DNA of 64,000 nucleotides from Mobula hypostoma (Eukaryota). The notes under the pieces are model-generated. The model was not told the origin of the DNA. It saw nothing but the letters and a program-made list of their open reading frames with translations, and did not search any database. How positions within the stretch are numbered: position 1 is the stretch's first letter; every line of letters begins with the position of its first letter. Below are positions 28,474-62,600 of the stretch, piece by piece. Where the stretch lies: contig NC_086121.1 in the NCBI RefSeq assembly GCF_963921235.1, positions 21,824,001 through 21,888,000 on the forward strand, given 5' to 3'. A program made the position numbers and the translations under genes.

Positions 28474-28996
28474 GTTCATGAGTAGCCTTGGTGCAGCCTT
28501 TTCCTTTATTTCAAAAGATGTGGTCACTAAAATCCAAATTCTGGAAAACTACGGATGTAGTGAAAGGGGCCAGGAATACAGAACAATTCAGTCAATGGTG
28601 AAGTATGAGGTTGACAACAAGCTGGTGGACCTGAGGAAGCGAGGTGACCATTGGGATTCTGGCTGCCGTACTCTGTTGCGACTACACCGTGCCCTCAAGT
28701 GGCTGCAGCTCTTTTTGGAAAAGCTGCGGGTGGCCTCTGATGACAGCAAAACTTCAGTCTTGTGTACAGACGCCTATAATGACTCCCTGGCAAACTATCA
28801 TCCCTGGATTGTGCGCAAAGCTGCAGTTCTTGCATTTCATTTACTGCCAAGTCGGGAAGAGTTTTTTGAAGTTATGAATATGGGCACAACAGAAAAGGTT
28901 GTGGCCACACTCGAGGAAGCTGTCCCACTCATTTCTAAGACCTATGACATCACACAAGATCTGTATGCTCAACATGACCTGCTTGATCTACCTTAG
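28474..28996 (+). CDS. CPTP: CPTP coding exon 2 (GLTP fold); spliced product 213 aa
   Basis: Acceptor ttctttttag|G TTC ATG joins exon 1 in frame. Contains FSFISKDVVTK, SGCRTLLRLHRALKWLQLFLE, YHPWIVRKAA and terminal LLDLP*; C1P-binding residues are retained. Confidence 0.97.
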
Positions 28997-41689: not shown

Positions 41690-42250
41690 AATGTTATTAA
41701 ACTGGGAAGAGTGCAGAAAAGATTTACAAGGACGTTTTGAAGACACTGGGGACTGAATTATGAGGAGACATTGGACAGGCTAAGATGGTGGAGACGAAGA
41801 TGTGATCTTATAGATGTTTATAAAATAATGAGGGGGAAAAGATAGGGTGAATGCATTCAGTCGTTTTTTTGGGGTTAGGGAATCAAGAACTAGAGGGCAT
41901 TGGTTTAAGTTAAGAGGAGAAAGATTTAATATGAACTTGATGGGCAACTTTTTTTTTTAACACAAAGGTTGATCAGTATGGGGAATGAGCTGCCAGAGGA
42001 AATAGTTGCAATCATAACTTTTAAAGCATAGTTCGACACTACTACTACGTTGACTCAGGCCAAGGGGGCCAGCGTCGGGCACGATGACGGACTCGCCACT
42101 TCTTCCTCTCCCTCATAGTTGGACAGGTAAGCGGATAGCAAAAGGTTATAAAGTTATTGGACAATTGTGAGCAGATTCAACGGGTATCTTGGTCTATATG
42201 GACCAGTTGGAGTGAAGGGCCTGTTTCTGTGTTGTATGACTTTGAACCAA
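41690..42250 (+). mobile_element. CR1 3' fragment containing a 75-bp RTE-like 3' end (42039-42113, minus) with 12-bp TSD
   Basis: RVQKRFTR motif. TSD CATAGTT(C/G)GACA at 42027-42038 and 42114-42125 flanks an insert with a (TAC)n end. Confidence 0.7.
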
Positions 42251-42279
42251 TTAATACACATCAGAAGCCACATGTAAAT

Positions 42280-42570
42280 AGAAAACGGCGTTCGGAAATC
42301 CGAGCGTCGTGAAATAAATTCAATAACAGAAATCATCAATAAAGATTAATGTGGACTCGCCGCGTAATGTACACCAGTATTACAAATCTAAAAGAAAACG
42401 GCTGCCACGCCTTTCTGTGAAAGAAAAATTACCCAGAATCCAGATCGAGCCAGAAAGCCCTCTATCTCTGCCGGTTTGGAGGCGAGAACACTGCGCATGT
42501 TCGGAAGTAGAAGCGGAGCGGTTGTCAGGGGTGAGATCGTTAGGAAGCGGACAGAAGGCTGGCGGGGTTG
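42280..42570 (+). promoter_or_regulatory. CpG-rich promoter/first exon of the zinc-finger gene
   Basis: CpG cluster with NRF1-like TGCGCATG (42492-42499) next to ETS CGGAAGT (42502-42508), followed by donor CAG|GTAAA at 42586/42587. Confidence 0.7.
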
Positions 42571-42586
42571 ATGCAGACAAAGGCAG
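42571..42586 (+). CDS. Possible short coding part of ZNF exon 1 (MQTKAG)
   Basis: ATG CAG ACA AAG GCA G|gt splices in frame to tttcag|GC CCG ATG GAG at 46945. Kozak context is weak, so ATG 46950 may be the real start. Confidence 0.4.
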
Positions 42587-44584
42587 GTAAAAGCCTTCGG
42601 TGTCAGGGCTCGGTTGTATGCAAACTGAGCGTGCAGTTTACTACAGAGGAAACAGTGACATATTTTCAAAGACACTTTATTTTAGTTTGACATTAAAAAT
42701 CAGTAGGTGCATTTTTATACTATTGGCTGAAGGGAAGTGGGCTGTTGGGCCCTGGCAGTCCCCGACGTTGTTTATATCCCGCTGCAGCCTTTCCCCGTCT
42801 ACTAGTTGCTGTAAATGCGTGTGCGTTGTCCTCGCCGTGCCGGGTCCACAGGGTGGGTGATTTTGTGTTGTACACAGAAGAGATTCTGCATGTCTCTACC
42901 AGAGCCACTCTATGCATTGGTGTCGAGAGCCAAAGAGGCAGTTTGCTAATTTCATTCAGGGAGAGGTGCTATTTCTCTCTCTCTTTTTCGTTTAGGATTG
43001 AGCTGGCCAGCTGCGTTTTACTGGTAGGAGACATGATGTACTGTTTCTGTGTTGCAGTTCGCCGACTCTGGGATTAAGTAAGGCAAAAGTCCAGCTTGCC
43101 ATTTTTGATTTGGTGACAAATATTTCAAATGCCTAAAGTTGGGATGATGCTTGGGTGTGATGCCACCCACTCCACCCTCTCTCAGTGCTCCCTTTCTGTG
43201 ATCAAGCTGCTCTCTAACTTCGCAGCTATAACCTGCCAGCATGTGCTCCTTCTTACCTCCCTCCCACCCCCATCCATTATATTATATTATTCTGGCTTCT
43301 TTCCCTTTGTTTTCCAGTCCGTTCTTGACTTGAAACGTGGAGTGCTTCAAAGTAAATTTATTATCAAAGTACAAACGTACATATGTGTCACAATATACAT
43401 CCCCGAGGCTTATTTTCTTACAGACATACTTACTAAATCCCCTCCATAGATGATTTCTGGCCTGCTGAGTTCCTCCAGCATTGTGTGTGAGTGTGTGAGT
43501 GTGTATGTGTGTATGTTGCTCTGCACTTCCAGCATCTGCAGAATCTCCTGTGTTTATGAGACCTTGCAGCTAAGTTTTTTGGAGAAGGTAAATGAAAAAT
43601 GTGGGAGAAAAGGGAACAACAAAAAAAAATACAAAGTTGGGACTGTAAATTTACCAAAACCTATAATGGCTAGAATTGGAAATGAAAGTGTGCTGAAAAT
43701 ACTCAGCAGGCCAGATATCTGTGGAGAGGGAAATATTGGCAGTGCTGTCTCAAACTGGAAAAACAGTTTATCTGAGTATCAGTTTCTATGAGTGTAGCTG
43801 AAACACCATTGTTAAAGATTGGGCTTCATTGGTATTGAGAGGGAGTGATAGAGACTAAAAAACAGGTTAGTGGGATGAAGAACGGAAGTGACCCGATACT
43901 GGAAGTTGCTGATCTTGTGGGCTTCATGAAGGTATTCTACAAAACTTGGTCTATGATCTTCCCCTATTGGATTATAAGACTATATGGGGGATGTTAATTG
44001 ATGATTACTCAGTTTTCAGTTCCATTTGCAACTCTTCAGCGTGAAGCAGCCCATTGCTGCATCAGCATGACCCACACAGAACTGAGACAAGAAGTGAAAT
44101 GTTGCAAATAACACTCATCCCGCAAGAGTGGCAGACAGTAAACATGTAATCATCTTTGTGTTATTTCTTTGTCACGTATATCCAGTCATCACAAACCTCA
44201 CTCGGACCAGCCACGCGCGCGCACGCACACACAAAGAGTCACAAAAGCACAGAGGAGGCAGCATATGCTGCAGTGATTGACTCTCCATCAAATATCTCAA
44301 AGACTTTCGCCACTTGCAAGGCTGATCTGGATAGTTCACCATTGCCTGGATGAAGGCAGCTGCAACACTGCTCTCTGAGCGTAATGCCAGTCGGTTAAAA
44401 CAGGTCTGCTTCGTTAATGTTCCATCCGCTGCAGTTTGAGCCGCCAACAAATGCATTGCAGCCACGCAGGCTATTTCAAACGCTTCTACCACCAAGAGCA
44501 ACGGCAGCAGGTGCATGGCCACGCACCTCCAACCACAGGTTGCCCTCCGAATCACTCACTGTCCTCACTACAAAATTGATAAGC

Positions 44585-44985
44585 AGGTGCTGGATATCCG
44601 AAGCAACACACGTACAGGGCACTGGAGGAAGCTCAGCAGGCCAGGCGGCATCTATGGAAACGAATAAACAGTCGACACCCTTCATCAGGAATGTGGGGGG
44701 AAAAGATGAGAAGTCAGAGCAAGAAGGTGGTGGGGGGGGAGGAAACTCAGCAGGTCAGGCAGCATCTGTGAAAATGAATAAATAATCAACGTTTCAGGCC
44801 AAGACCCTTCTTCAGGACTGGAAAGGAAGGGGGAAGAAGCCAGAATAAAAAGGTGGGGAGAGGGAAAGGAAAATAGCTGGCAGGTGAGAGGTGAAGCCAG
44901 GTGGGTGGGAAAGGTAAAGGCTGGATAAGGAGGAATCTGATAGGAGAGGAGAGTGTACCATAGGAGAAGGGGAAGGAAAAAATGT
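44585..44985 (-). repeat. Two tandem PLE terminal-repeat fragments
   Basis: CTCAGCAGG(C/T)CAGGC(G/A)GCATCT occurs twice, followed by a purine-rich tract. Confidence 0.75.
44783..44820 (-). ncRNA. Hammerhead ribozyme motif, core intact
   Basis: Minus strand CAGTC-CTGAAGA-AGGGTCTTGGCCT-GAAAC-GTT-GATTA. Confidence 0.65.
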
Positions 44986-45566
44986 GCAAGTGTTCTTGGG
45001 TCTAAATCCTATCATTCCTTACCAGCATTGTGGTAGTATCTTCAAGAAAGAACAAGTAATAAGTGCTTATTGTGCCATTACTGAATAATTCCAGCATATT
45101 AAACTGCCTTGAGGGCATCTGTCATCAATGCTGTGTGGTCTGGGTAGCCCTTAAATGCAAATTCATATTCTGCTTCAGATCTTCACCAAGCAGAAAATGT
45201 ATTACGGGCAATGCTCAAGTGGTAGCACAACATTTCTCAATGATTTTATGGAATTTAAAGCAGTCCTCATTCATGTTGTCATTTACTCTGTTTATAATGA
45301 TTGTGTGGAAATATTTCTTGGGTAAACTCTTCTCACTGCTGGCTGGTGGACTTCAAGGTGAGTGGTCCCAGGTTCAAATCCGGCCAGCTCCAATACCCCA
45401 CTTTCCATCCATGCTGTGTTGAGCATCGAGCTAGCAACTTGGCCTCATTTAAAAAAAAACACAAAATGCTAAAGAAAGTGCAAGGTTGTCACCCGATGCG
45501 TTACAGGGTGCGGAGAGGAATAATAACAACAAACTCTTCTCTAAGGCTGCATCTGTATATCCATGC

Positions 45567-46604
45567 CACACACATTAAAGTTGCTGGTGAACACAGCAGC
45601 CCAGGCAGCATCTCTAGGAAGAGGTACAGTTGACGTTTCAGGCCGAGACCCTTCATCAGGACTAACTAAAAGAAGAGCTAGTAAGAGATTCAAAGGTGGG
45701 AGGGGGAGGGGAGATCCAAAATGATAGGAGAAGACAGGAGGGGGAGAGATGGAGCCAAGAGCTGGACAGTTGATTGGCAAAAGGGATATGAGAGGATCAT
45801 GGGACAGGAGGCCCAGAGAGAAGGAAAAGGGGGAGGGGGGGGAAACCCAGAGGATGGGCAAGGGGTATAGTGAGAGGGACAGAGGGAGAAAAAGGAGAGA
45901 GAGAAAAAGAATGTGTATATAAATAAACAACAGATGGGGTACGAGGGGGAGGTGGGGCATTAGCAGAAGTTTGAGAAGTCAATGTTCATGCCATCAGTTT
46001 GGAGGCTACCCAGACGGAATGTAAAGTGTTGTTCCTCCAACCTGAGTGTGGTTTCATCTTTACAGTAGAGGAGGCCGTGGATAGACATGTCAGAATGGGA
46101 ATGGGATGTGGAATTAAAATGTGTGGCCACTGGGAGATCCTGCTTTCTCTGGCGGACAGAGTGTAGGTGTTCAGTGAAATGATCTCCCAGTCTGCGTGGG
46201 GTCTCGCGAATATATAGAAGGCCACATCAGGAGCACCAGACGCAGTATATCACCCCAGCCGACTCACAGGTGAAGTGTTGCCTCACCTGGAAGGACTGTC
46301 TGGGGCCCTGAATGGTGGTAAGGGAGGAAGTGTAAGGGCATGTGTAGCACTTGTTCCACTTACAAGGATAAGTGCCAGGAGGGAGATCAGTGGGGAGGGA
46401 TGGGGGGGACGAATGGACAAGGGAGTCGCGTAGGGAGCGATCCCTGCGGAAAGCGGGGGGGGGGGAGGGAAAGATGTGCTTAGTGGTGGGATCCTGTTGG
46501 AGGTGGCGGAAGTTACGGAGAATAATATGTTGGACCCGGAGGCTGGTGGGGTGGTAGGTGAGGACCAGGGGAACCCTATCCCTAGTGGGGTGACAGGAAG
46601 ATGG
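45567..46604 (-). mobile_element. Penelope-like element 3' part (GIY-YIG + terminal repeat)
   Basis: ORF 46227..46754 has RDRVPLVLTYHPTSL...FTCESAGVIYCVWC; homologous to 48880-49880. Confidence 0.92.
45626..45664 (-). ncRNA. Hammerhead ribozyme motif, core intact, one stem I mismatch
   Basis: Minus strand TAGTC-CTGATGA-AGGGTCTCGGCCT-GAAAC-GTC-AACTG. Confidence 0.7.
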
Positions 46605-46944
46605 ATCTGTATATCCATTCTCACTGAGCACAGATTGCAATTTGCGCAGGATGGTTCTCTGTGCATGTTCTCTGTGTTCCACTGTCTTTGAACTGGATTG
46701 TTTCTTTTGCTGGTACTGCAGGGTAATGAGCATGAATGGCAAATGATAAAGCAAAAGTTTCCTCTGTACTGGCTACCTGTGCCTCTTTGTACGTCCACAG
46801 AGTCCCCCAAAAAGGAGGGGGTTTGTGAAACGCTGTTCTCTGGTGCACCGATCTGCCATTGATAGCTGGGCTTGGGACAATGAGTTTGCCTACCTTGGAG
46901 TGTGGGTTGTGATGTGTAATCAATGCCAACGTGCTGTGTTTCAG

Positions 46945-47861
46945 GCCCGATGGAGAAGTTGCAGCAGTCACAAACTGACCCCAGTGCTGAGGACAAGAGT
47001 GCCACGCCCAGCCACGACCCAAGGCGCTTCACGTGCGGGGAGTGCGGCAAGAGCTTCAAGCAGCACTGCGACCTGAAGCGACACGGCAGGGTGCACAGCG
47101 GCGAGCGGCCGTACTGGTGCCCGGCCTGCGGCAAGCGCTTCAGCACCTCCTACAACTTGCTGATCCACCAGCTGATCCACAGCGGTGAGAAGCAGTACAA
47201 GTGCCGGGCTTGCGGCCGGGAGTTCGTGCAGCAGCACCACCTCGTCACCCACCAGCGCACCCACACGGGCGAGAAGCCCTACCCGTGCCCGGTGTGTGGC
47301 AAAGCCTTCCGCCAGTCCTCCACCATGATGGTGCACCGGCGAATCCACGGCGAGGAGCGGCCCTACCGCTGCCCTGACTGTGCCAAGAGCTTCAAGACCT
47401 CGTCCAACCTGTCTAAGCACCGGCGCATCCACACGGGCGAGCGGCGCTTCGTCTGCGAGGTGTGCTCCCGCCGCTTTCTGCACTCCCACCACCTGACCAC
47501 GCACCGCCGCACCCACGTGGGCGAGCAGCCTGCCTCCTGCCCTCTCTGCGGCCAGCACTTCGGTGACCCAGAGCAGCTCCTGGCTCACCGCCGGGCGCAC
47601 GCTGGCGAGCCTCCCTACAGCTGCGAGACCTGTGGCAAAGGCTTTGGCCAGCGCTCCACGCTGGTGCGCCACCGCCGCACGCATACCGGCGAGAAGCCTT
47701 ACGCCTGCCCCATCTGCGCCAAGACGTTCCGGCAGACTTCCACCATGCAGGTGCACTATCGCACGCACTCTGAGGATCGGCCGTACCGCTGCCTGCAGTG
47801 TGGCAAGGGCTTCAAGAGCGCCTCCAATCTGATCGGGCATCATCGTGTACACAGAAGGTAG
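46945..47861 (+). CDS. C2H2 (Kruppel-type) zinc-finger protein, 10 tandem fingers, no KRAB/SCAN/BTB domain
   Basis: ORF 46923..47861 has 10 CxxC-x12-HxxxH fingers with TGEKP-like linkers and high GC3. Acceptor tgtgtttcag at 46944; in-frame ATG at 46950. Confidence 0.93.
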
Positions 47862-48169
47862 AGCATCGCCTGACTTGTAATGGACTCATTTTCATCAGGC
47901 AGGACTGTGCGATTGTAGAGACAGTGACTCACTGGCTGAGGACTTTCTGAGTGACTAATGACATGGGTGGAGCATTTTAATTTAGTGGATGCCCTCAAAT
48001 CATTGAGCTTGGGGTATTAACAGCCAGCTAAAGCCAAAGTTTTATAACAAGTGTGAGATGGCACAGTCTTAGGATGTTTCTCTATACGGGCTAGTGCACA
48101 ACTTTCAAGCACACATTAACTTTTTGAATTGATTGAAAGTCTTTGAATGTCTCATCTTTAAGAACAGGA

Positions 48170-49882
48170 TTGGATGTCCAATCCTTATATACTTCCATTC
48201 CCCATCAAGAAGGCCTCAAAGCCCTCCGCCACTTTCTGGACAATAGACCTCACCAGTTCCCCACCACCACGACCCTCCTCTGGTTGGCAGAACTGGTACT
48301 CACACTTAATAACTTCTCTTTTAGCTCTTCCCACTTTCTTCAGACCAAGGGTGTAGCCATGGGCACTCGCATGGGCCCCAGCTATGCCTGCCTCTTCGTT
48401 GGTTATGTGGAACAGTCTATGCTCCAAACCTATACTGGTACTGCTCCCCAACTTTTCCTTCGCTACATTGACGACTACATTGGTGCTGCTTCCTGCACCC
48501 ATGCTGAGCTTGTCAATTTCATCAACTTTGCTTCTAACTTTCACCCAGCCCTCAAATTCACTTGGTCCATCTCGGACACTTCTCTCCCCTTTCTCGATCT
48601 CTTGGTCTCCATCTCTGGAGACAGACTGTCCACTGACATCTTCTATAAGCCCACTGACTCTCAAAACTACCTCGACTATATCTCTTCCCACCCTGCCACA
48701 TGCAAAGATGCTATTCCCTATTCCCAGTTCCTCCGTCTCCGCCACATCTGCTCCCAGGATGAGGCTTTCCATTCCAGGACATCTCAAATGTCCTCTTTCT
48801 TTAAGGGTCATGGTTTCCCTTCTATCGTCATCAATGACGCCCTCACCCGCATCTCCTCCATTTCCCACACTTCGGCCCTCACCCCATCCCCCCGCCACCA
48901 CAACAGGGACAGAGTTCCCCTTGTTCTCTCCTACCACCCCACCAGCCTCCGGATTCAGCACGTTATCCTCCACAACTTCTGCCACCTTCAACAGGACCCC
49001 ACCACTAAGCACATCTTTCCCTCTCCACCCCTCTCCGCTTTCCGCAGGGATCAGTCCCTCCGCAACTCACTGGTCCACACATCCCTCCCCACGGATCTCC
49101 CACCCGGCACTTATCCCTGTAAGCGTAAGTGCTACACCTGTCCCTACACCTCCTCTCTTGCCACCATTCAGGACCCCAAACAGTCCTTCCAGGTGAGGCA
49201 ACACTTCACATGTGAGTCTGTTGGGGTCATCTGTTGTATCCGGTGCTTCCGGTGTGGCCTCCTCTACATCGGTGAAACCTGACGCAGATTGGGGGACTGC
49301 TTCGTCGAGCACCTCTGCTCCGTCCGCCACAACAGACAGGATCTTCCGGTCGCCACCCACTTCAACTCTGCTTCACATTCCCATTCGGATATGTCCATAC
49401 ATGGCCTCCTCTACTTCCATGATGAGGCCAAACTCAGGTTGGAGGAGCAACACCTCATATACCGTCTGGGTAGTCTCCAGCCCCTTAGCATAAACATTGA
49501 ATTCTCCAACTTCCAGTAATTCCCTCCCCCTCCCTTCCCCTATCCCTATTTCACTCTGCCCCCTCCTCCAGCTGCCTATCACCTTCCTCATGGTTCCGCC
49601 TCCTTCTACTACCCATTGTGTTTTCCCCTATTCCTCCTTCACCTTTCCTGCCTATCACCTCCCTGCTTCCCTTCCCCCACCCCTTTATCTTTCCCCTTAC
49701 TGGTTTTTCACCTGGAACCTACCAGCCTTCTCCTTCCCACCCTCCCCCCACCTTCTTTATAGGGCCTCTGCCCCTTCCCCCTACAGTCCTGACGAAGGAT
49801 CTCGGCCTGAAACGTTGACTGTTTGTTTCCACGGATGCTGCCCGACCTGCTGAGTTCTTCCAGCGTGTTGTGTGTGTTGCTT
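48170..49882 (+). mobile_element. Penelope-like element (Neptune-like; RT + Cys linker + GIY-YIG), 5'-truncated
   Basis: LDVQSLYTSIPH, QTKGVAMGTRMGPSYA, RYIDD, LPFLD, CKRKCYTC linker, and GVICCIRC..GLLYIGET*RRLGDCFVEH. One stop at 49280; the frame ends at 49519. A pyrimidine-rich tail and a hammerhead follow. Confidence 0.93.
49783..49822 (+). ncRNA. Minimal type I hammerhead ribozyme motif (PLE-associated), core intact
   Basis: ACAGTC-CTGACGA-AGG(ATCTCGG)CCT-GAAAC-GTT-GACTGT: 6-bp stem I, CUGAnGA and GAAA core, NUH triplet GUU, palindromic AACGTT at stem III. Confidence 0.8.
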
Positions 49883-50324
49883 TAAGAACAGTGATGTACC
49901 CAGAAACTTTAAAGCTTGACTTGGTTTTTTGTAGCACTCTTTGGTTCCCTTTCAGGACACCCCAAAATACCTTGCAATGAAAATTTTTTTAATGCAGTCG
50001 CTTGCAAAACAATATGTGGGCACCTAGCTCCCTCAAACAGTGATGTGTTAATGAACAGATAATGTGTTTTACTGGTGGTAACTGAGAGATAAATATTTGT
50101 TTCTTTGTAAACTGGAATTGGTCTGTGGAACATTCCATGATGCAGACAGAGGCTGGGAAATTCCAAAGCAGAGACTGAGAATGAGAATGGAGCGAAATGT
50201 ATGTTGATGTTTTTAAAAGTGTGGAGCAATACTTCATACGCCACATGCAATGGATTTGATTGGCTTAGATACTACCACTTTATTTTCAGTTTGACAATTT
50301 TATTTGATAGAACATTAGATTTAT

Positions 50325-50617
50325 ATGCCACGAGGGGGCATTGTTTTAAGGTGCTTGGAAGTAGGTACAAGGGGGAATGTCAGACGTAGGTTTTCCACAC
50401 ACAGAGTGGTGGGTGTGTGGAATGCACTGTCAGCGAAGGTGGTAGAGGTGGATACAATAGGGTCTTTTAAGGGGCTCTTAGATTGGTACCTTGAGCTTAG
50501 AAAAATAGAGGGCTATGCGGTAAGGAAATTCTAGGCAGTTTCTAGAGTAGGTTACATGGTCAGTACAACATCGTGGGCTGAAGGGCCTGTAATGTGCTGT
50601 AGATTTCTATGTCTATG
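50325..50617 (+). mobile_element. CR1 3' fragment
   Basis: TRGHCFKVLGSRY, RVVGVWNAL, TTCTATGT tail. Confidence 0.85.
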
Positions 50618-51631
50618 TAGATTATTTATTTAAAATTGCTTCACATTTTAAGTTTGTAAGCACAAATTTTTTGAGAAGGTGAAATCTGCAGATGATGGAA
50701 ATCTGAATGTACTGTGCATTTGGTGTACATACTGTGCTCTCTTCTACACTGGAGAAACCAAATGAAGATGGAAAGATGAGCAGAACACCTCTATCCAGGA
50801 TGCCACCAACTCTGTGATTTCAGCCACTCTCCGTCACCCTCTATTGCTTCAATTCCAATGTCATCACTTTCCTCCACTGCTCTGATGATGTTTAACGTAA
50901 GCTCCACGAACGAGACTCCCTTTTATTTGGACACATTGATGCTGTTGGGCCTGAACATTGAATTTAACAATTTCAATTTACCAACCATTCCCTTTATCTG
51001 CTCCATAGATGTGGCTATACGTTTATTTCAATTTGGTGATCTCTTTATAATCCAACTTCATGTTTTTCCTTTTAATTGTCAGTTTGACAAATTAGGTTTG
51101 CACCTCATCACAGACTCACCCTCTTCTCTTGACACTCACTCACTCTGCATCTTAATGCAGACTTGTTTTCTCTCCTTCGTTCCAGTCGTTTTTCACCCAA
51201 AATGTTGACTCTGTTTCTCTCTCCACAGATGTTTTCAACATTTTTTTTGGTTTTTATCTAAGATCTACTGTTGCTGTAAAGTATTCCCACTCAGACTAGC
51301 CGATTGTTTAGCTGCATGATAGCAAGATTTAGCTTGGAGATCAAGGTACATTCATATATTCATACTTGGGAATCAAACATGAAGATAATCCAAGATATGT
51401 GAACCAATTTAATGTATTATGAAGTATAAAATGGCCTTTTTAAAAAAGCAAGTTTTCTGATTAAAAACTTCCTTCTTTGAGCCCCATCCTGGTCCCTGAA
51501 TGTTGAGTAATTAGTGTTGTTGAGTTAGAGTTTGACCCTCTTAGCATTTATCTTGAGAAGTAGGAGCTCTTTAATAAACAAGTGTTAAGACTCTCTACTG
51601 TCAGTACAGGTTTAGCAACTTCCCTGCTATA

Positions 51632-52610
51632 AGGAACTCAGCAGGCCAGGCAGCCTCTATGGAAAAGAGTAGTCGACGTTTCACGCCAAGACCCTTCTTC
51701 AGGACTGGAAAAAAAGATGAGGAGTCAGAGTGAGAGGCTGGGCGGAAGGGAGGAAGAAACACAAGGTGATAGGTGAAACCAGAAATGGGGGAAAGGGGTG
51801 AAGTAAAGAGCTGGGAAGTTGATTGGTGAAAGAGATACAGGGCTATAGAAGGGGAAATGCAATGGGAGAGGGCAGAAGACCATGGAAGAAAGAAAAGGGG
51901 GAGAAACACCAGAGGAGGCGATAGGCAGTAAGGAGATAAGGTGAGAGAAGGAAATGGGAATAGGGAATGGTGAAGGGGTTGACCATTACTGGGAGTTCGA
52001 GAAATCAATGTTCATGCCATCAGGTTGGAGGCTACCCAGATGGAATATAAAGTATTGCTGCTCTAACCTGAGTGTGGCCTCACTGCGACAGTAGAGGAAG
52101 CCGTGGTCTGACATAGGGGAATGGGAAGTGGAATTAAAATGGGTTGCCACTTGAAGATCCCACTTTTTCTGTTGGACAGAGTGTAGGTGCTCGGTGACGT
52201 AGTCTCCCAATCTGCATCAGGTCTCTCCAATATAAGGGAGGCCACACCGGGAGCACTGGATACAGTAGGTGACCCCAGTAGACTCACAGGTGAAGTGTCG
52301 CCTCATTTCGAAGGACTATTTGGGGCCCTGAATAGTGGTGAGGGAGGAGGTGTAGAGGCAGGTGTAGCACTTGTTCCGCTTGCAAGGATCATTTCGGGAG
52401 GGAGATCATTGGGGAGGCATAAATGCACAAGGGAGTCGTGTAGGGAGCGATCCCTGTGGAAAGAAGAAAGTGAGGTGGAGGGAAAGATGTGCTTGGCGGT
52501 GGGACCCTGTTGGAGATGGTGGAAGTTACAGGGAATATGTACTGAACACGGAGACTGGTGGGGTGGTAGGTGAGGACCAGAGGAAACTTATCCCTGGTGG
52601 GGTGGTGATA
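51632..52610 (-). mobile_element. Penelope-like element 3' part, left arm of an inverted pair
   Basis: RDKFPLVLTYHPTSL, ATLRLEQQYFIFHLGSLQPDGMNIDFSN, terminal repeat with hammerhead. Confidence 0.9.
51671..51707 (-). ncRNA. Hammerhead ribozyme motif, core intact, weakened stem II
   Basis: Minus strand CAGTC-CTGAAGA-AGGGTCTTGGCGT-GAAAC-GTC-GACT. Confidence 0.6.
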
Positions 52611-53515
52611 GGATCCCACCCCCCACTTTCTGCAGGGATGGCTCCCTACACGACTGTCTTGTCCATTTGTACCTCCCCACCGATCTCCCCCCGGCACTTA
52701 TTTTTGCAAACAGAAGAAGTGCTACACCTCCTCCCTCACTACCGTTCAGGCCCCGAAACAGTCCTTCCAGGTGTGGCGACACTTCACCTGTGAGTCTACT
52801 GGGGTCATTGACTGTATCCGGCGCTCCCAGTGTGGCCTCCTGTATATCGGGGAGATCCGACAGATTGGGAGACCGCTTTGTTGAGCACCTACGCTCTGTC
52901 CACCTGAAAAAGCGTGATCTCCTTCCTAGTAGCCACCCATTGAAATTCCACTTCCCATTTCCATTCCGACATGCCAATCCATGGTCTCCTGTACTGTCAC
53001 GATGAGGCCACACTCAGGTTGGAGGAGCAACACTTTATGTTCCTTCTGGGCAGCCACCAACCTGATGGCATGAACATCGATTTCTCAAACTTCCAGTACT
53101 GCTCCCCCACTTTCTCCTTCACCATTCCCCATTCCCATTTCCCTCTCTTACCTCATCTCCTTCCCTGCCCATCACCTCCCTCTGGTGCTCCTCCCCCTTT
53201 TCTTTCTTCCATGGCCTTCTGTCCTCTCCTATCAGATTCCCTTTCCTCCAGCTCTATCTCTCCTTCACCAATCAACTGACCAGCTCTTTACTCCTCCCCA
53301 CTTCCCCATTTCATCTATCACCTTGTGTTTCTTCCTGCCCTCCCTCTACTTTCTTACTGACTCCTCATCTTTTTCTCCAGTCCTGATGAAGGGTCTCAGC
53401 ACAAAACTTCAACTGTTTACTCTTTCAATAGATGCTGCCTGGCCTGCTGTGTTGCTCCAGCATTTTGTGTGTGTTGCTTGGATTTCCAGCATTTGCAGAC
53501 TTTCTCTTGTTTGTG
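52611..53515 (+). mobile_element. Penelope-like element 3' part, right arm of an inverted pair
   Basis: RLGDRFVEHLRSV, EATLRLEEQHFMFLLGSHQPDGMNIDFSNF, terminal repeat. Confidence 0.9.
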
Positions 53516-57688: not shown

Positions 57689-59135
57689 TGAGGTTCTAGA
57701 GGACTGGAGGGTTGCAGATGTTGTTCCCTTATTGAAGAAAGGGAGTAGAGATAGCCCAGGAAATTATAGACCAGTGAGTCTTACTTCAGTTGTTGGTAAG
57801 TTGATGGAGAAGATCCTGAGAGGCAGGATTTATGAACATTTGGAGAGGTATAATATGATTAGGAATAGTCAGCATGGCTTTGTCAAAGGCAAGTCATGCT
57901 TTACGAGCCTGATTGGATTTTTTGAGGATGTGACTAAACACATTGAAGGTAGAGCAGTAGATGTAGTGTATATGGATTTCAGGAAGGCATTTGCTAATAT
58001 ACCACCTACAAGGCTTATTGAGAAAGTAAGGAGGCATGGGATCCAAGGGGACATTGCTTTGTGGATCCAGAACTGATTTGCCCACAGAAGGCAAAGAGTG
58101 GTTGTAGATGGGTTATATTCTGCATGGAGGTCAGTGACCAGTGGTGTGCTTCAGGGATCTATTCCAGCACCCCTTCTCCTCGTGATTTTTATAAATGACT
58201 TGGATGAGGAAGTGGAGGGATGGGTTAGTAAATTTGCTGATGACACAAAGGTTGGGGGTGTTGTGAATAGTGTGGAGGGCTGTCAGAGGTTACAGCAGCA
58301 CATTGATAGGATGCAAAACTGGGCTGAGAAATTGCAGATGGAGTTCAACCCAGATAAGTGTGAGGTAGTTCATTTTGGTAGGTCAAATATGGCAGAATAT
58401 AATATTAATATAGACGTGTATATTGGCAGTGTGGAGGATCAGAGGGACCTCGGGGTCCGAGTCCATTGGACACTCAAAACTGCTGCGCAGGTTGGCTCTG
58501 TGGTTAAGAGGGCATACGGTGCATTGGCCTTCATCAACCATGGGATTGAGTTTAAGAGCCGAGAGGTAATGTTGCAGCTATATAGGACCCTGATCAGATA
58601 CCACTTGGAGTACTGTGCTCAGTTCTGGTTGCCTCACTACAGGAAGCATGTGGAAACCATGGAAAGGGTGCAGAGAAGATTTACAAGGATGTTGCCTGGA
58701 TTGGGGAGCATGCCTTATGAGAATAGGTGGAGTGAACTTGGCCTTTTCTCCTTGGAGTGGTGGAGGATGAGGGGTGACCTGATAGACGTGTATAAGATGA
58801 TGAGAGGCATTGATATTGTGGATAGTCAGAGGCTTTTTCCCAGGGCTGAAATGGCTAGCACAAGAGCACCCAGTTTTAAGGTGCTTGGAAGTAGGTACAG
58901 AGGAGATGTCATGGGTAAGTTTTTTTATGCAGAGTGGACAGTGTGTGGAATGGGCTGCTGACAATGGTGGTGGAGGCAGATACGATAGGGTCTTTTAAGA
59001 GACTCCTGGATAGGTACATGGAGCTTAGAAAAATAGAGGGCTATGGGTAACCCTAGGTAATTTCTAAGGTAGGGACATGTTTGGCACAGCTTTGTGGGCC
59101 GAGGAGTCTGTATTGTGCTGCAAGTTTTCTATGTT
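57689..59135 (+). mobile_element. CR1 LINE RT + 3' end, relatively young
   Basis: NYRPVSLTSVVGK, SQHGF, VTSGVLQGS, SKFADDTK, 287-codon open frame, TTCTATG tail. Confidence 0.95.
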
Positions 59136-59624: not shown

Positions 59625-62600
59625 CCCCCCCATCCCCCAGAAACGTCCATCGGGGAGTGGAGCCCCTAGTCTGTGTGCCTTGCCTGGGTGGCCGGCCTTG
59701 CCGGCGCGGTGCGGGTACCCTCACTGGTTGCTTAATGTCCAAGTGCGCCGGTTTGAGGTGGTCCACTGTAAAAGTCTCTTCCCGGCTACCCACCTCCACG
59801 ACACACGTGGTTCTGTTGTGCTGGATCACCTTGAAGGGTCCCTCGTACGGCCGCTGTAGAGATGACCTGTGCATGCCCCTGCGAATAAAAACATACTCAC
59901 AGTCTCAGAGGTCTTTAGGGGTGAAGGATGGCGTGGGACCATGCCTGGAGGTCGGGACCGGTGCCAGGGTCCCTACCTTGTCCCGCAGCCTCGTTTGCAC
60001 TACTGTTGGAGTTTCTTCTAAACCTCGGGCCTCTGGTACGAACTCGCCTGGGACCATCGGGGGGCGCCGTAGACCAATTCTGCCGAGGAGGTGTCCAGGT
60101 CCTCCTTGGGGGCTGTGCGGATGCCCAGAAGGACCCAGGGAAGCTCATCTGTCCAGTTGGGGCCCCTGAGGTGCGCCATCAGGGCCAACTTGAGATGCTG
60201 GTGGAATCACTCTACCAAACCGTTGGACTGGGGATGGTACACAGTGGTGTGATGCAGCTGGGTGCCCAGGAGCTGCACCAGTGCTGTCCACAAACCAGGC
60301 TTGATGTCGGCGGTGATGTCTGTTGGGAGGCCGAACCTGGCGATCCAGTTTGCAATGAGCGTCCTGGCGCAAGACTCAGTGGACGTGTCTGCGAGTGGTA
60401 CAGCTTCCGGCCACCTGGTGAACCTGTCTACCATGGTAAAGATATACCTGGCAGGGGGCCAACGATGTCCACGTGGATGTGTTGGAACCTCCTGTGCATC
60501 GGCTGGAACTGCTGGAGGGGAGCCTTCACATGCTGCTGGAATTTGGTGGTCTGGCAGTGTACGCAGGTCCTGGCCCAGTGTCCGACCTGTTCGCGCAAAC
60601 CGTGCCAGATGAATCTGTCTGCTACCAGCTTGATGGATGGGTGGACCAGGTTGTGCAGCGTGTCGAACACCCGGCGCCTCTATGCTGCTGGTACCACGGG
60701 TCGGGGTTTGCCGGTAGACATGTCGCACAGGAGTCGATCCGCTGTTGGGCTGATGGAGACGTCCTCCAACTGGAGCCCCGAAATGGCGGTGCGGTAAGCC
60801 GGGATCTTGGTGTCCGACCGTTGTGCTTCTGCCAGTGCTGCGTAGTCTATTCCTGAGAACGATTTGCCTACTGAGTGGAGGCAGGGGCGAGACAGTGTGT
60901 CGGCGATGACATTGTTCTTCCCTGCGATGTAGCGGACGTCTGTGGTGAGTTCTGAAATAACGGACAGGTGCCTCTGCTGCCGAGCCGACCATGGGTCCGA
61001 TACCTTGGCCAGTGCGAAGGTGAGGGGCTTGTGGTCTGTATACACAGTGAACTTCCTTCCCTTGAGGAAGTACCGGAAATGCCGGACAGCCAGGTAGATC
61101 GCTAGCAACTCTCTGTCGAAAGCGCTGTACTTCACCTCTGGTGGCCATAGGTGGAGGCTGAAGAAAGCGAGTGGTGGCCACTGGTCCTCAACGAGCTGCT
61201 CCAGGACTCTGCCAACTGCCGTGTTGGAAGCGTCGACTGTGAGTGCCCTGGGTACATCGACTCTCGGGTGCACTAGGAGGGCCGCCTTTGCCAGCGCCTC
61301 CTCGGCCTGCTCGAACGCCTCCATGGACTCCGCGTCCCATGCCACCTCTTTGGCCTTGCCGGCCATCAGGCTGAACAAGGGTCTCATGATGCGTGCCACC
61401 GCCGGCATGAATTAATGATGAAAGTTGACCATCCCTACAGACACCTGCAGGCCCTTGACCGTGCTGGGCTTGGGGAACTGGCAGATGGCCTGGACCTCGT
61501 CCAGTGGGGGAACTGTGCCATGTCGGTTGACTCTGTGGCCCAAGAAATCCATCTCCGTCAGCCTGAACTGGCACTTTGCTGAATTGATTGCCAGTTCGTG
61601 GTCGCTCAGGCGTTGGCAGAGCTGGCGCAAATGTGCCACGTACTCTTGGTGCGAACTGCTGGCCACCAGGATATGGTCCAAGTAAATGAAAACGAAATCC
61701 AGGCCGTGTCCCACCGAGTCCATGAGCCTTTGGAAAGTTTGGGCTGCATTCTTGAGACCAAAAGGCATCCTCAGGAATTCGAACAAGCCGAACGGGGTGA
61801 CGAGGGCTGTGTTGGGCGCATCGTTGGGGTGCACTGGCATCTGATGGTATCCCCTGACCAGGTCGATTTTCGAGAAGATGGTTGCTCCGTGCAGGTTCGC
61901 CGTGAAGTCCTGGATGTGGGATACTGGGTATGTGTCAGCGGTTGGGGCATGGTTGAGCCTTCTGTAGTCGCCGCAGGGCCTCTATCCTCCAGTGAACTTG
62001 GGCACCATGTGCAGCAGAGATGCCTACGGGCTGTCTGAGCGGCATGCAATTCCCATCTCTTCCATCTTACGGAACTCTTCCTTGGCGAGGTGGAGCTTGT
62101 CGGGTGGGAGCCTGCGAGCTCGGGCATGCAGCAGCGGTCCTTGTGTGGGGATGTGGTGCTGCACGCCGTGCTTGGGGTCGGCCGTGGAGAACTGCGGGGT
62201 GACTATGGAGGGGAATTCCGCCAACACCCTGGCGAATTCATTACCCGAGAGGGTCACGGAATCCAGGTGGAGGACCGGTAGCTTGGCTTCTCCAAGCTGG
62301 AAAGTCTGGAACATCTCGGCGTGGACCAAACGCTGGCCTTTTAGGTTGACCAGGAGGCAGTTGGCTCATAGGAAATCTGCCCCGGTAGTGGCTGTGACAC
62401 CGCTGCCAACGTGAAAGTCCAAGTGAAACGGCTGGACCCAAAATGCAGTGAGATAGTTCATGGGCCGTATGTCCGAATACTGGTGCCATTTGCAGCGGTG
62501 AGTTCAGGTCCTGGGACCGCGTTACGAGTGTCCATGTTTGAGGGGGGGAGTACGCTGACTTCGGCCCTGGTATCTACCGGGAAGTGCTGCCCAGAGTGTC

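Follow-up and report, generated by a model that had tools for sequence, protein, structure and literature searches.

Two independent Penelope-like element insertions around a zinc-finger exon of Mobula hypostoma, with a hammerhead that is probably a weakened passenger

Introduction

Inverted Alu pairs in pre-mRNAs and 3' untranslated regions (3' UTRs) and the repeat-flanked exons of circular RNAs share a layout in which two retroelements of the same family, in inverted orientation and at most a few kb apart, enclose an exon or follow it and can form a long imperfect duplex. Here we analyze a locus of similar outline in Mobula hypostoma, in which a coding exon for C2H2 zinc fingers (here termed ZNF) stands between two inverted copies of a Penelope-like element (PLE), one of which carries a hammerhead ribozyme motif in sense orientation downstream of the ZNF stop codon. 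The locus lies in a stretch of 64,000 nucleotides (NCBI RefSeq assembly GCF_963921235.1, contig NC_086121.1, positions 21,824,001 to 21,888,000 of the forward strand), hereafter the window, the coordinates of which are used throughout. A first-pass annotation of the window had proposed that the ZNF transcript could form a duplex that loops out the exon, that the mRNA could be cut by its own ribozyme and, as a speculation, that cleavage in trans would couple ZNF dosage to transposon activity.

The closest described motifs are the minimal hammerheads of PLEs, which occur mostly as single motifs from truncated copies; a single motif shows no detectable self-cleavage in vitro and dimers cut weakly (Cervera and de la Peña 2014, PMC4209133). 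The hammerhead of the Anolis PLE Poseidon cut only in the presence of the element's own protein, and no RNA-seq reads were found to start or end at its cut site (PMC11167929). A hammerhead located in a host 3' UTR is the discontinuous one of the rodent Clec2 genes, a complete type-III ribozyme that several mammals carry in these genes (Martick et al. 2008, cited in PMC6155905).

Against this background, the results reported below make it likely that the locus represents two ordinary and independent insertions of dead PLEs around the ZNF exon, accompanied by a weakened passenger hammerhead, in an ordinary transposon neighbourhood.

Results

Two truncated PLE copies with separate target-site duplications

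The upstream copy (45565-46604, minus strand) is a dead, 5'-truncated PLE that retains the end of the reverse transcriptase (RT), the GIY-YIG region and a 3' tail with a hammerhead, and it is bounded by a perfect target-site duplication of 14 bp, ATCTGTATATCCAT (left copy 45551-45564, right copy 46605-46618). The downstream copy (48168-49882, plus strand) is likewise 5'-truncated and consists of an open frame followed by the 3' tail. Its duplication, CTTTAAGAACAG, or (CTT)TAAGAACAG (left copy 48156-48167, right copy 49880-49891), is also perfect, with a length of 9-12 bp, the CTT being common to the tail of the element. The duplications set the edges of both copies and bear out the elements that the first-pass annotation had placed at 45567-46604 and 48170-49882, as well as the gaps of ~340 and ~310 nt that it had given around the ZNF: the minus-strand PLE ends about 340 nt 5' of the ZNF exon, to which it is antisense, and the plus-strand PLE begins 306 nt 3' of the stop codon, in sense. 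With a separate, perfect duplication at either copy, the two PLEs represent independent insertion events. An origin as a single inverted pair was considered and rejected, given these duplications and the unique DNA of 1.56 kb, with the exon in it, that lies between the copies.

The identity of the elements follows from several features. The frame of the plus-strand PLE is open from 48137 to 49279, is interrupted by a single in-frame stop (49280-49282) and resumes to 49519, after which the 3' tail begins. Compared with a 554-aa PLE protein containing RT and GIY-YIG domains, the frame shows 50% identity over 371 aa (residues 94-464), and residues 472-539 are matched by the piece that follows the stop. 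The RT domain receives a borderline Pfam match (RVT_1, E = 9e-07; score 29.2 bits, cutoff 29.6). GIY-YIG is present C-terminal to the RT, since pieces in the window cover residues 447-539 of the 554-aa protein, where Pfam locates GIY-YIG at 447-486; in the plus-strand copy this domain is broken by the in-frame stop, and Pfam alone gave no match in the 76-aa plus-strand piece. Searches with the open reading frame (ORF) of this copy returned 745 homologues, the best of which are PLE ORFs from Hypanus sabinus (82%) and M. hypostoma (77%), and exact look-ups of two versions of the ORF yielded no record. A PLE-type RT, a GIY-YIG domain after it, a hammerhead in the 3' tail and a target-site duplication are hence all found, as expected of a member of the PLEs. 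Lacking the 5' part of the element, neither copy can be autonomous. Two of the PLE ORFs among the best hits are annotated under the names of host genes, the one from H. sabinus as divergent protein kinase domain 1C isoform X2 and the one from M. hypostoma as chitinase domain-containing protein 1 isoform X1, which indicates that ray gene models often include PLE sequence.

A solitary zinc-finger exon

The ZNF ORF spans 46923-47861 on the plus strand. A predicted AG acceptor (46942-46943) preceded by a pyrimidine-rich run opens the coding exon (46944-47861), in which the ATG follows after 6 nt (46950) and ten tandem C2H2 fingers, counted by eye, lead to the TAG stop codon (47859-47861). Pfam matches to the ORF are strong for both zf-C2H2 (E = 3.7e-55, with nine stretches passing individually) and zf-H2C2_2 (E = 9.3e-67). 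The coding part has a GC content of 0.65, a third-position GC content of 0.87 and an observed/expected CpG ratio of 0.81, in a window with 43.5% GC overall; the exon stands out as a sharply delimited island of GC and CpG from AT-rich, CpG-poor surroundings.

Local tblastn searches of the 64-kb window with two pieces of the exon (46950-47243 and 47298-47858) revealed no second ZNF-like exon. The ZNF can therefore be regarded as a solitary gene, and a ZNF cluster, which had been considered, was rejected on the same result. Among representative proteins, the search for ZNF homologues was dominated by giant multi-finger proteins, and no match above 50% identity to the C-terminal piece (47298-47858) was found among database proteins of 103-327 aa, those of M. 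hypostoma included.

Divergent arms with a strong potential to pair

The two PLE copies share an inverted homology composed of a long block, in which the upstream arm (45943-46604) pairs with the downstream arm (48884-49532) over 665 nt at 77.7% identity with four gap openings (E = 1e-152 to 1e-154), and a short block of 75 nt at 78.7% identity (45589-45663 against 49785-49857). The longest exact runs measure 30, 26 and 23 nt. The homology of about 1 kb reported in the first-pass annotation is correct as a span and slightly generous as a measure of pairing, only about 740 nt being alignable. Its premise that the arms can pair is corroborated by co-folding of the long arms, which yields a predicted energy of -944.5 kcal/mol and 552 intermolecular pairs, as compared to about -470 kcal/mol and 201-251 pairs in five shuffled controls. 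A long imperfect duplex would hence be physically possible if both arms were present in one RNA.

Whereas the two target-site duplications are perfect, without a change in a total of 26 bp, identity between the arms is no more than 77.7%, a divergence of 22%. The PLE copies therefore differed before they were inserted, and nothing suggests that the complementarity between them has been maintained.

A probable passenger hammerhead with a damaged helix II

A search for the hammerhead core pattern returned four matches in the window, where shuffled sequences give an expectation of 0.00, and the only match on the plus strand is located at 49789-49815, in the tail of the downstream PLE. It belongs to a minimal type-I motif (49783-49822) that is sense to the ZNF, with a predicted cut at 49816/49817; both this cut site and the orientation agree with the first-pass annotation, which had in addition considered this hammerhead the best preserved of those present. 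That description fits the core, which is intact (CUGACGA, GAAA and GUU at 49789-49816, corresponding to C3-A9, G12-A14 and U16.1-H17), and helix I, a perfect helix of 6 bp (ACAGUC/GACUGU) that is the best in the window, but it does not fit helix II, which is damaged. The latter reads G.U, G-C, AxC and U.G, so that the stable helix on G10.1-C11.1 that such a motif requires is missing, and its computed energy in the family register is +3.6 kcal/mol, as compared to -3.7 kcal/mol for a full GGGU/GCCC stem and -2.0 kcal/mol for the commonest version in the window. Helix III is absent and a palindromic ACGU occupies its place, through which a dimer would be possible.

The alignment of ten PLE tails from the window defines the layout of the family: a helix I of 5-6 bp, the CUGANGA box, one unpaired A, a helix II of 4 bp closed by a CUYG loop, GAAA, the palindromic ACGU in the place of helix III and the cut site. 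The hammerhead of the minus-strand PLE (45626-45665) matches the family in its core and helix II and is mismatched at the first pair of helix I; in a plus-strand transcript it would be antisense. The motif is the standard one that each PLE of this family has in its tail, and it is probably a passenger and not an adaptation. Rfam made no hammerhead call on the motifs of the window, either at the gathering score or at E<=10, which is to be expected because they have no helix III. Between 47862 and 51600, the core-pattern scan identified no second intact sense hammerhead.

Self-cleavage of the ZNF mRNA by the sense motif appears unlikely, because helix II is destabilized, helix III is absent, the putative 3' UTR offers no sense partner and single minimal PLE hammerheads showed no detectable self-cleavage in vitro (PMC4209133). 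The published data make the prior for activity low, with weak cutting by dimers and, for the Anolis Poseidon hammerhead, dependence on the protein of the element (PMC4209133, PMC11167929).

Candidate limits of the ZNF transcript

Downstream of the exon, the first canonical poly(A) signals on the plus strand are an ATTAAA at 51460 and an AATAAA at 51573 (51460-51578). Our scan found no AATAAA or ATTAAA from 47862 up to these positions, as the first-pass annotation had stated, and no common variant signal in the interval of 306 nt that separates the stop codon from the plus-strand PLE. A weak variant, TTTAAA, with a U-rich stretch behind it, is located at 49908-49913, 26 nt past the end of the PLE, and is a candidate for the original 3' end. 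With the PLE removed, the distance from the stop codon to this signal would be about 320 nt, and it is from this spacing that we infer that the plus-strand PLE probably landed inside a short ZNF 3' UTR and lengthened it.

The 5' side admits two arrangements. A CpG-rich stretch at 42000-42850 (observed/expected CpG 0.6-1.08), with a donor-like CAG|GTAAAA after 42586, is a candidate for a promoter and non-coding first exon, and the minus-strand PLE would be intronic if this candidate is real. A local transcription start at the ZNF exon is equally possible, as the exon is CpG-island-like and has its ATG only 6 nt in. Inspection by eye of plus-strand frames of at least 45 aa between 39 and 46.95 kb revealed no plausible N-terminal coding exon upstream. 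Open frames located at about 39.7-41.4 kb resemble remnants of long interspersed nuclear elements (LINEs).

Density of PLEs and the expectation of chance

With the plus-strand PLE as blastn query, 12 PLE pieces are found in the window; with its tail as query, at least 14 matches are found in the 64 kb, eight of them within 44.6-53.5 kb. Under a uniform model with 14 tails per 64 kb, the chance that a given exon is flanked on both sides by PLEs in opposite orientations, with their edges no more than about 350 nt away, is roughly 0.25%. By this rough estimate, a genome of this size would contain hundreds of such exons, and still more where PLEs are nested, as they are here. Taken together, the separate duplications, the 22% divergence of the arms and the very high density of PLEs point to coincidence and not to design.

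Other PLE remnants lie close to the locus. A head-to-head inverted pair (51634-52605, minus strand, and 52616-53479, plus strand), the arms of which lie 10 nt apart and are about 70% identical to the plus-strand PLE, looks like a one-event inverted insertion, and a quick k-mer check of its outer edges found no clear shared duplication. On the minus strand, two adjoining tail fragments occupy 44601-44920, one of which (44789-44815) has an intact hammerhead core; in the other, the GAAA box and most of helix II are missing. Finally, a more divergent PLE-like fragment (50690-51250, plus strand), recognized by eye from a GIY-YIG-like stretch followed by a tail that has lost the CUGANGA box, would lie in sense within a long ZNF 3' UTR, should there be one.

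Other features of the window

A CPTP exon (28478-28993, plus strand; feature to 28996) is 100% identical to M. hypostoma CPTP and 98% identical to that of M. birostris, which places the window in M. hypostoma or in a genome almost indistinguishable from it. In both Mobula assemblies INTS11 is located upstream of CPTP, on the minus strand, and the gene tables of the two species call no gene within 10 kb downstream of CPTP. Several further mobile elements were recognized by eye. A LINE 3' fragment with a C-terminal RT-like stretch (50325-50620, plus strand) has similar counterparts at 41700-42000 and in an ORF at 58098-58961; a tRNA-like stretch (45330-45470, plus strand), with the T-arm motif GGTTCAAATCC and then an A-rich run, is probably a tRNA-derived short interspersed nuclear element just upstream of the minus-strand PLE; and the ORFs at 60207-61840 (minus strand) resemble the integrase and reverse transcriptase of a long terminal repeat retrotransposon.

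Discussion

The sequence of events that we regard as likely is a simple one. A solitary C2H2 gene would have come to lie within a local nest of PLEs through two separate retrotranspositions, each leaving behind a 5'-truncated, non-autonomous copy with its own duplication. The downstream insertion probably hit the ZNF 3' UTR and lengthened it, so that some ZNF transcripts may carry PLE sequence. The inverted orientation of the two copies would be a coincidence and any duplex or editing a by-product; cutting of the ZNF mRNA by the ribozyme would be unlikely, and we infer that the arrangement as such has no function.

Word shares in sequencing runs are suggestive of the same account. In four RNA-like runs of this species, the sampled words of 46945-48140 are represented to 0.78-0.98 and those of 46600-50600 to 0.41-0.61, and for the exon with its proximal flank RNA-like runs reach 0.96-0.98. 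The runs thus cover several hundred bases beyond the exon, with the restriction that their being RNA is a guess and that arithmetic on word shares cannot strictly prove PLE bases to be among them. Some observations weigh against this account or limit it. The gene model of the ZNF may differ from the simple reading of 303 aa, as no protein of 103-327 aa matched the C-terminal piece above 50% identity; an annotated model, if any, may be longer or absent. As regards the hammerhead, helix II of the sense copy can adopt a shifted register of 3 bp at -0.2 kcal/mol, and with a perfect core and helix I some residual activity, in the company of a partner RNA or of the PLE protein, is conceivable.

Among the alternatives, the one to which we would give most room, while still considering it improbable, is that one transcript contains the exon together with both inverted PLEs and that the resulting pre-mRNA duplex leads to adenosine-to-inosine (A-to-I) editing, nuclear retention or altered splicing, as with inverted Alu. 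The complementarity of 740 nt, in which exact stretches reach 30, 26 and 23 bp, and the co-folding energy, about twice that of shuffled arms, would allow for it, and the CpG-rich candidate promoter with a good donor 4.4 kb upstream would place the minus-strand PLE in an intron. On the other hand, the CpG-island-like exon with its ATG 6 nt in suggests that transcription could begin downstream of that PLE, and the arms bear no sign of maintained complementarity. A further alternative, which we regard as quite unlikely, makes the ZNF exon an internal one: if the donor-like AAG|GTAGAG at 47857/47858 were used, the plus-strand PLE would be intronic and back-splicing into a circular RNA could take place. 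The layout does resemble that of repeat-flanked circular-RNA exons, the donor-like sequence overlaps the stop codon, and the missing 303-aa product among database proteins of 103-327 aa, in a species that has been annotated, would be congruent with it. That donor, however, departs from the preferred bases at +4 to +6, the searches downstream revealed neither another ZNF-like exon nor any other that is obviously coding, and ZNF arrays are mostly found in the last exon of their genes.

Least probable of all, and in our opinion very hard to sustain, is cleavage of the ZNF mRNA at the sense hammerhead by way of the hammerheads of other PLE transcripts or of the PLE protein, which would tie ZNF dosage to PLE activity. 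An intact CUGANGA/GAAA/UH core, a helix I of 6 bp and, in the palindromic ACGU, the potential for an intermolecular helix III speak for such a mechanism; both dimer action and assistance by protein are known for PLE hammerheads (PMC4209133, PMC11167929), and a hammerhead does exist in the Clec2 3' UTR (PMC6155905). Against this stand a helix II that is broken in the family register, the low activity reported even for intact dimers, the absence of reads beginning or ending at the cut site in Anolis RNA-seq (PMC11167929), the putative reach of the transcript to 49783 and the status of the motif as a passenger present in thousands of copies. The same very low probability applies to the broader regulatory proposal, namely that a ZNF mRNA bearing the PLE hammerhead is cut when PLE RNA or protein is abundant, or that the inverted pair drives editing or circularization of the exon. 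Coupling of ZNF dosage in trans to PLE activity has no support in these results, and the regulatory model of the first-pass annotation must be considered unsupported. If it were true, ZNF dosage would track transposon activity, and a transposon-borne hammerhead regulating a host mRNA would be the first such case for the minimal PLE motif.

The explanation by two ordinary, independent PLE insertions gives the locus a more general meaning, since it suggests that an abundant retrotransposon bearing a ribozyme reshapes the ends of genes in ray genomes, one of its insertions having probably lengthened the ZNF 3' UTR by 1.7 kb. In comparison with known systems, the two PLEs repeat the layout of inverted Alu pairs with arms that are more diverged (78% identity). 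The sense motif recalls the rodent Clec2 hammerhead in being located, in sense orientation, downstream of a host stop codon (Martick et al. 2008, as cited in PMC6155905); unlike the Clec2 ribozyme, it is an incomplete passenger borne by a transposon, and its place in the mature mRNA is putative. The closest likeness is to the minimal PLE hammerheads (PMC4209133), with which the motif shares the type-I core, the lack of helix III, the palindromic 15.2-16.2 (ACGU), the extra nucleotide before 10.1 and the location in the 3' tail of a PLE. It departs from them in its weakened helix II and in a U instead of a C at position 17, and in nothing essential.

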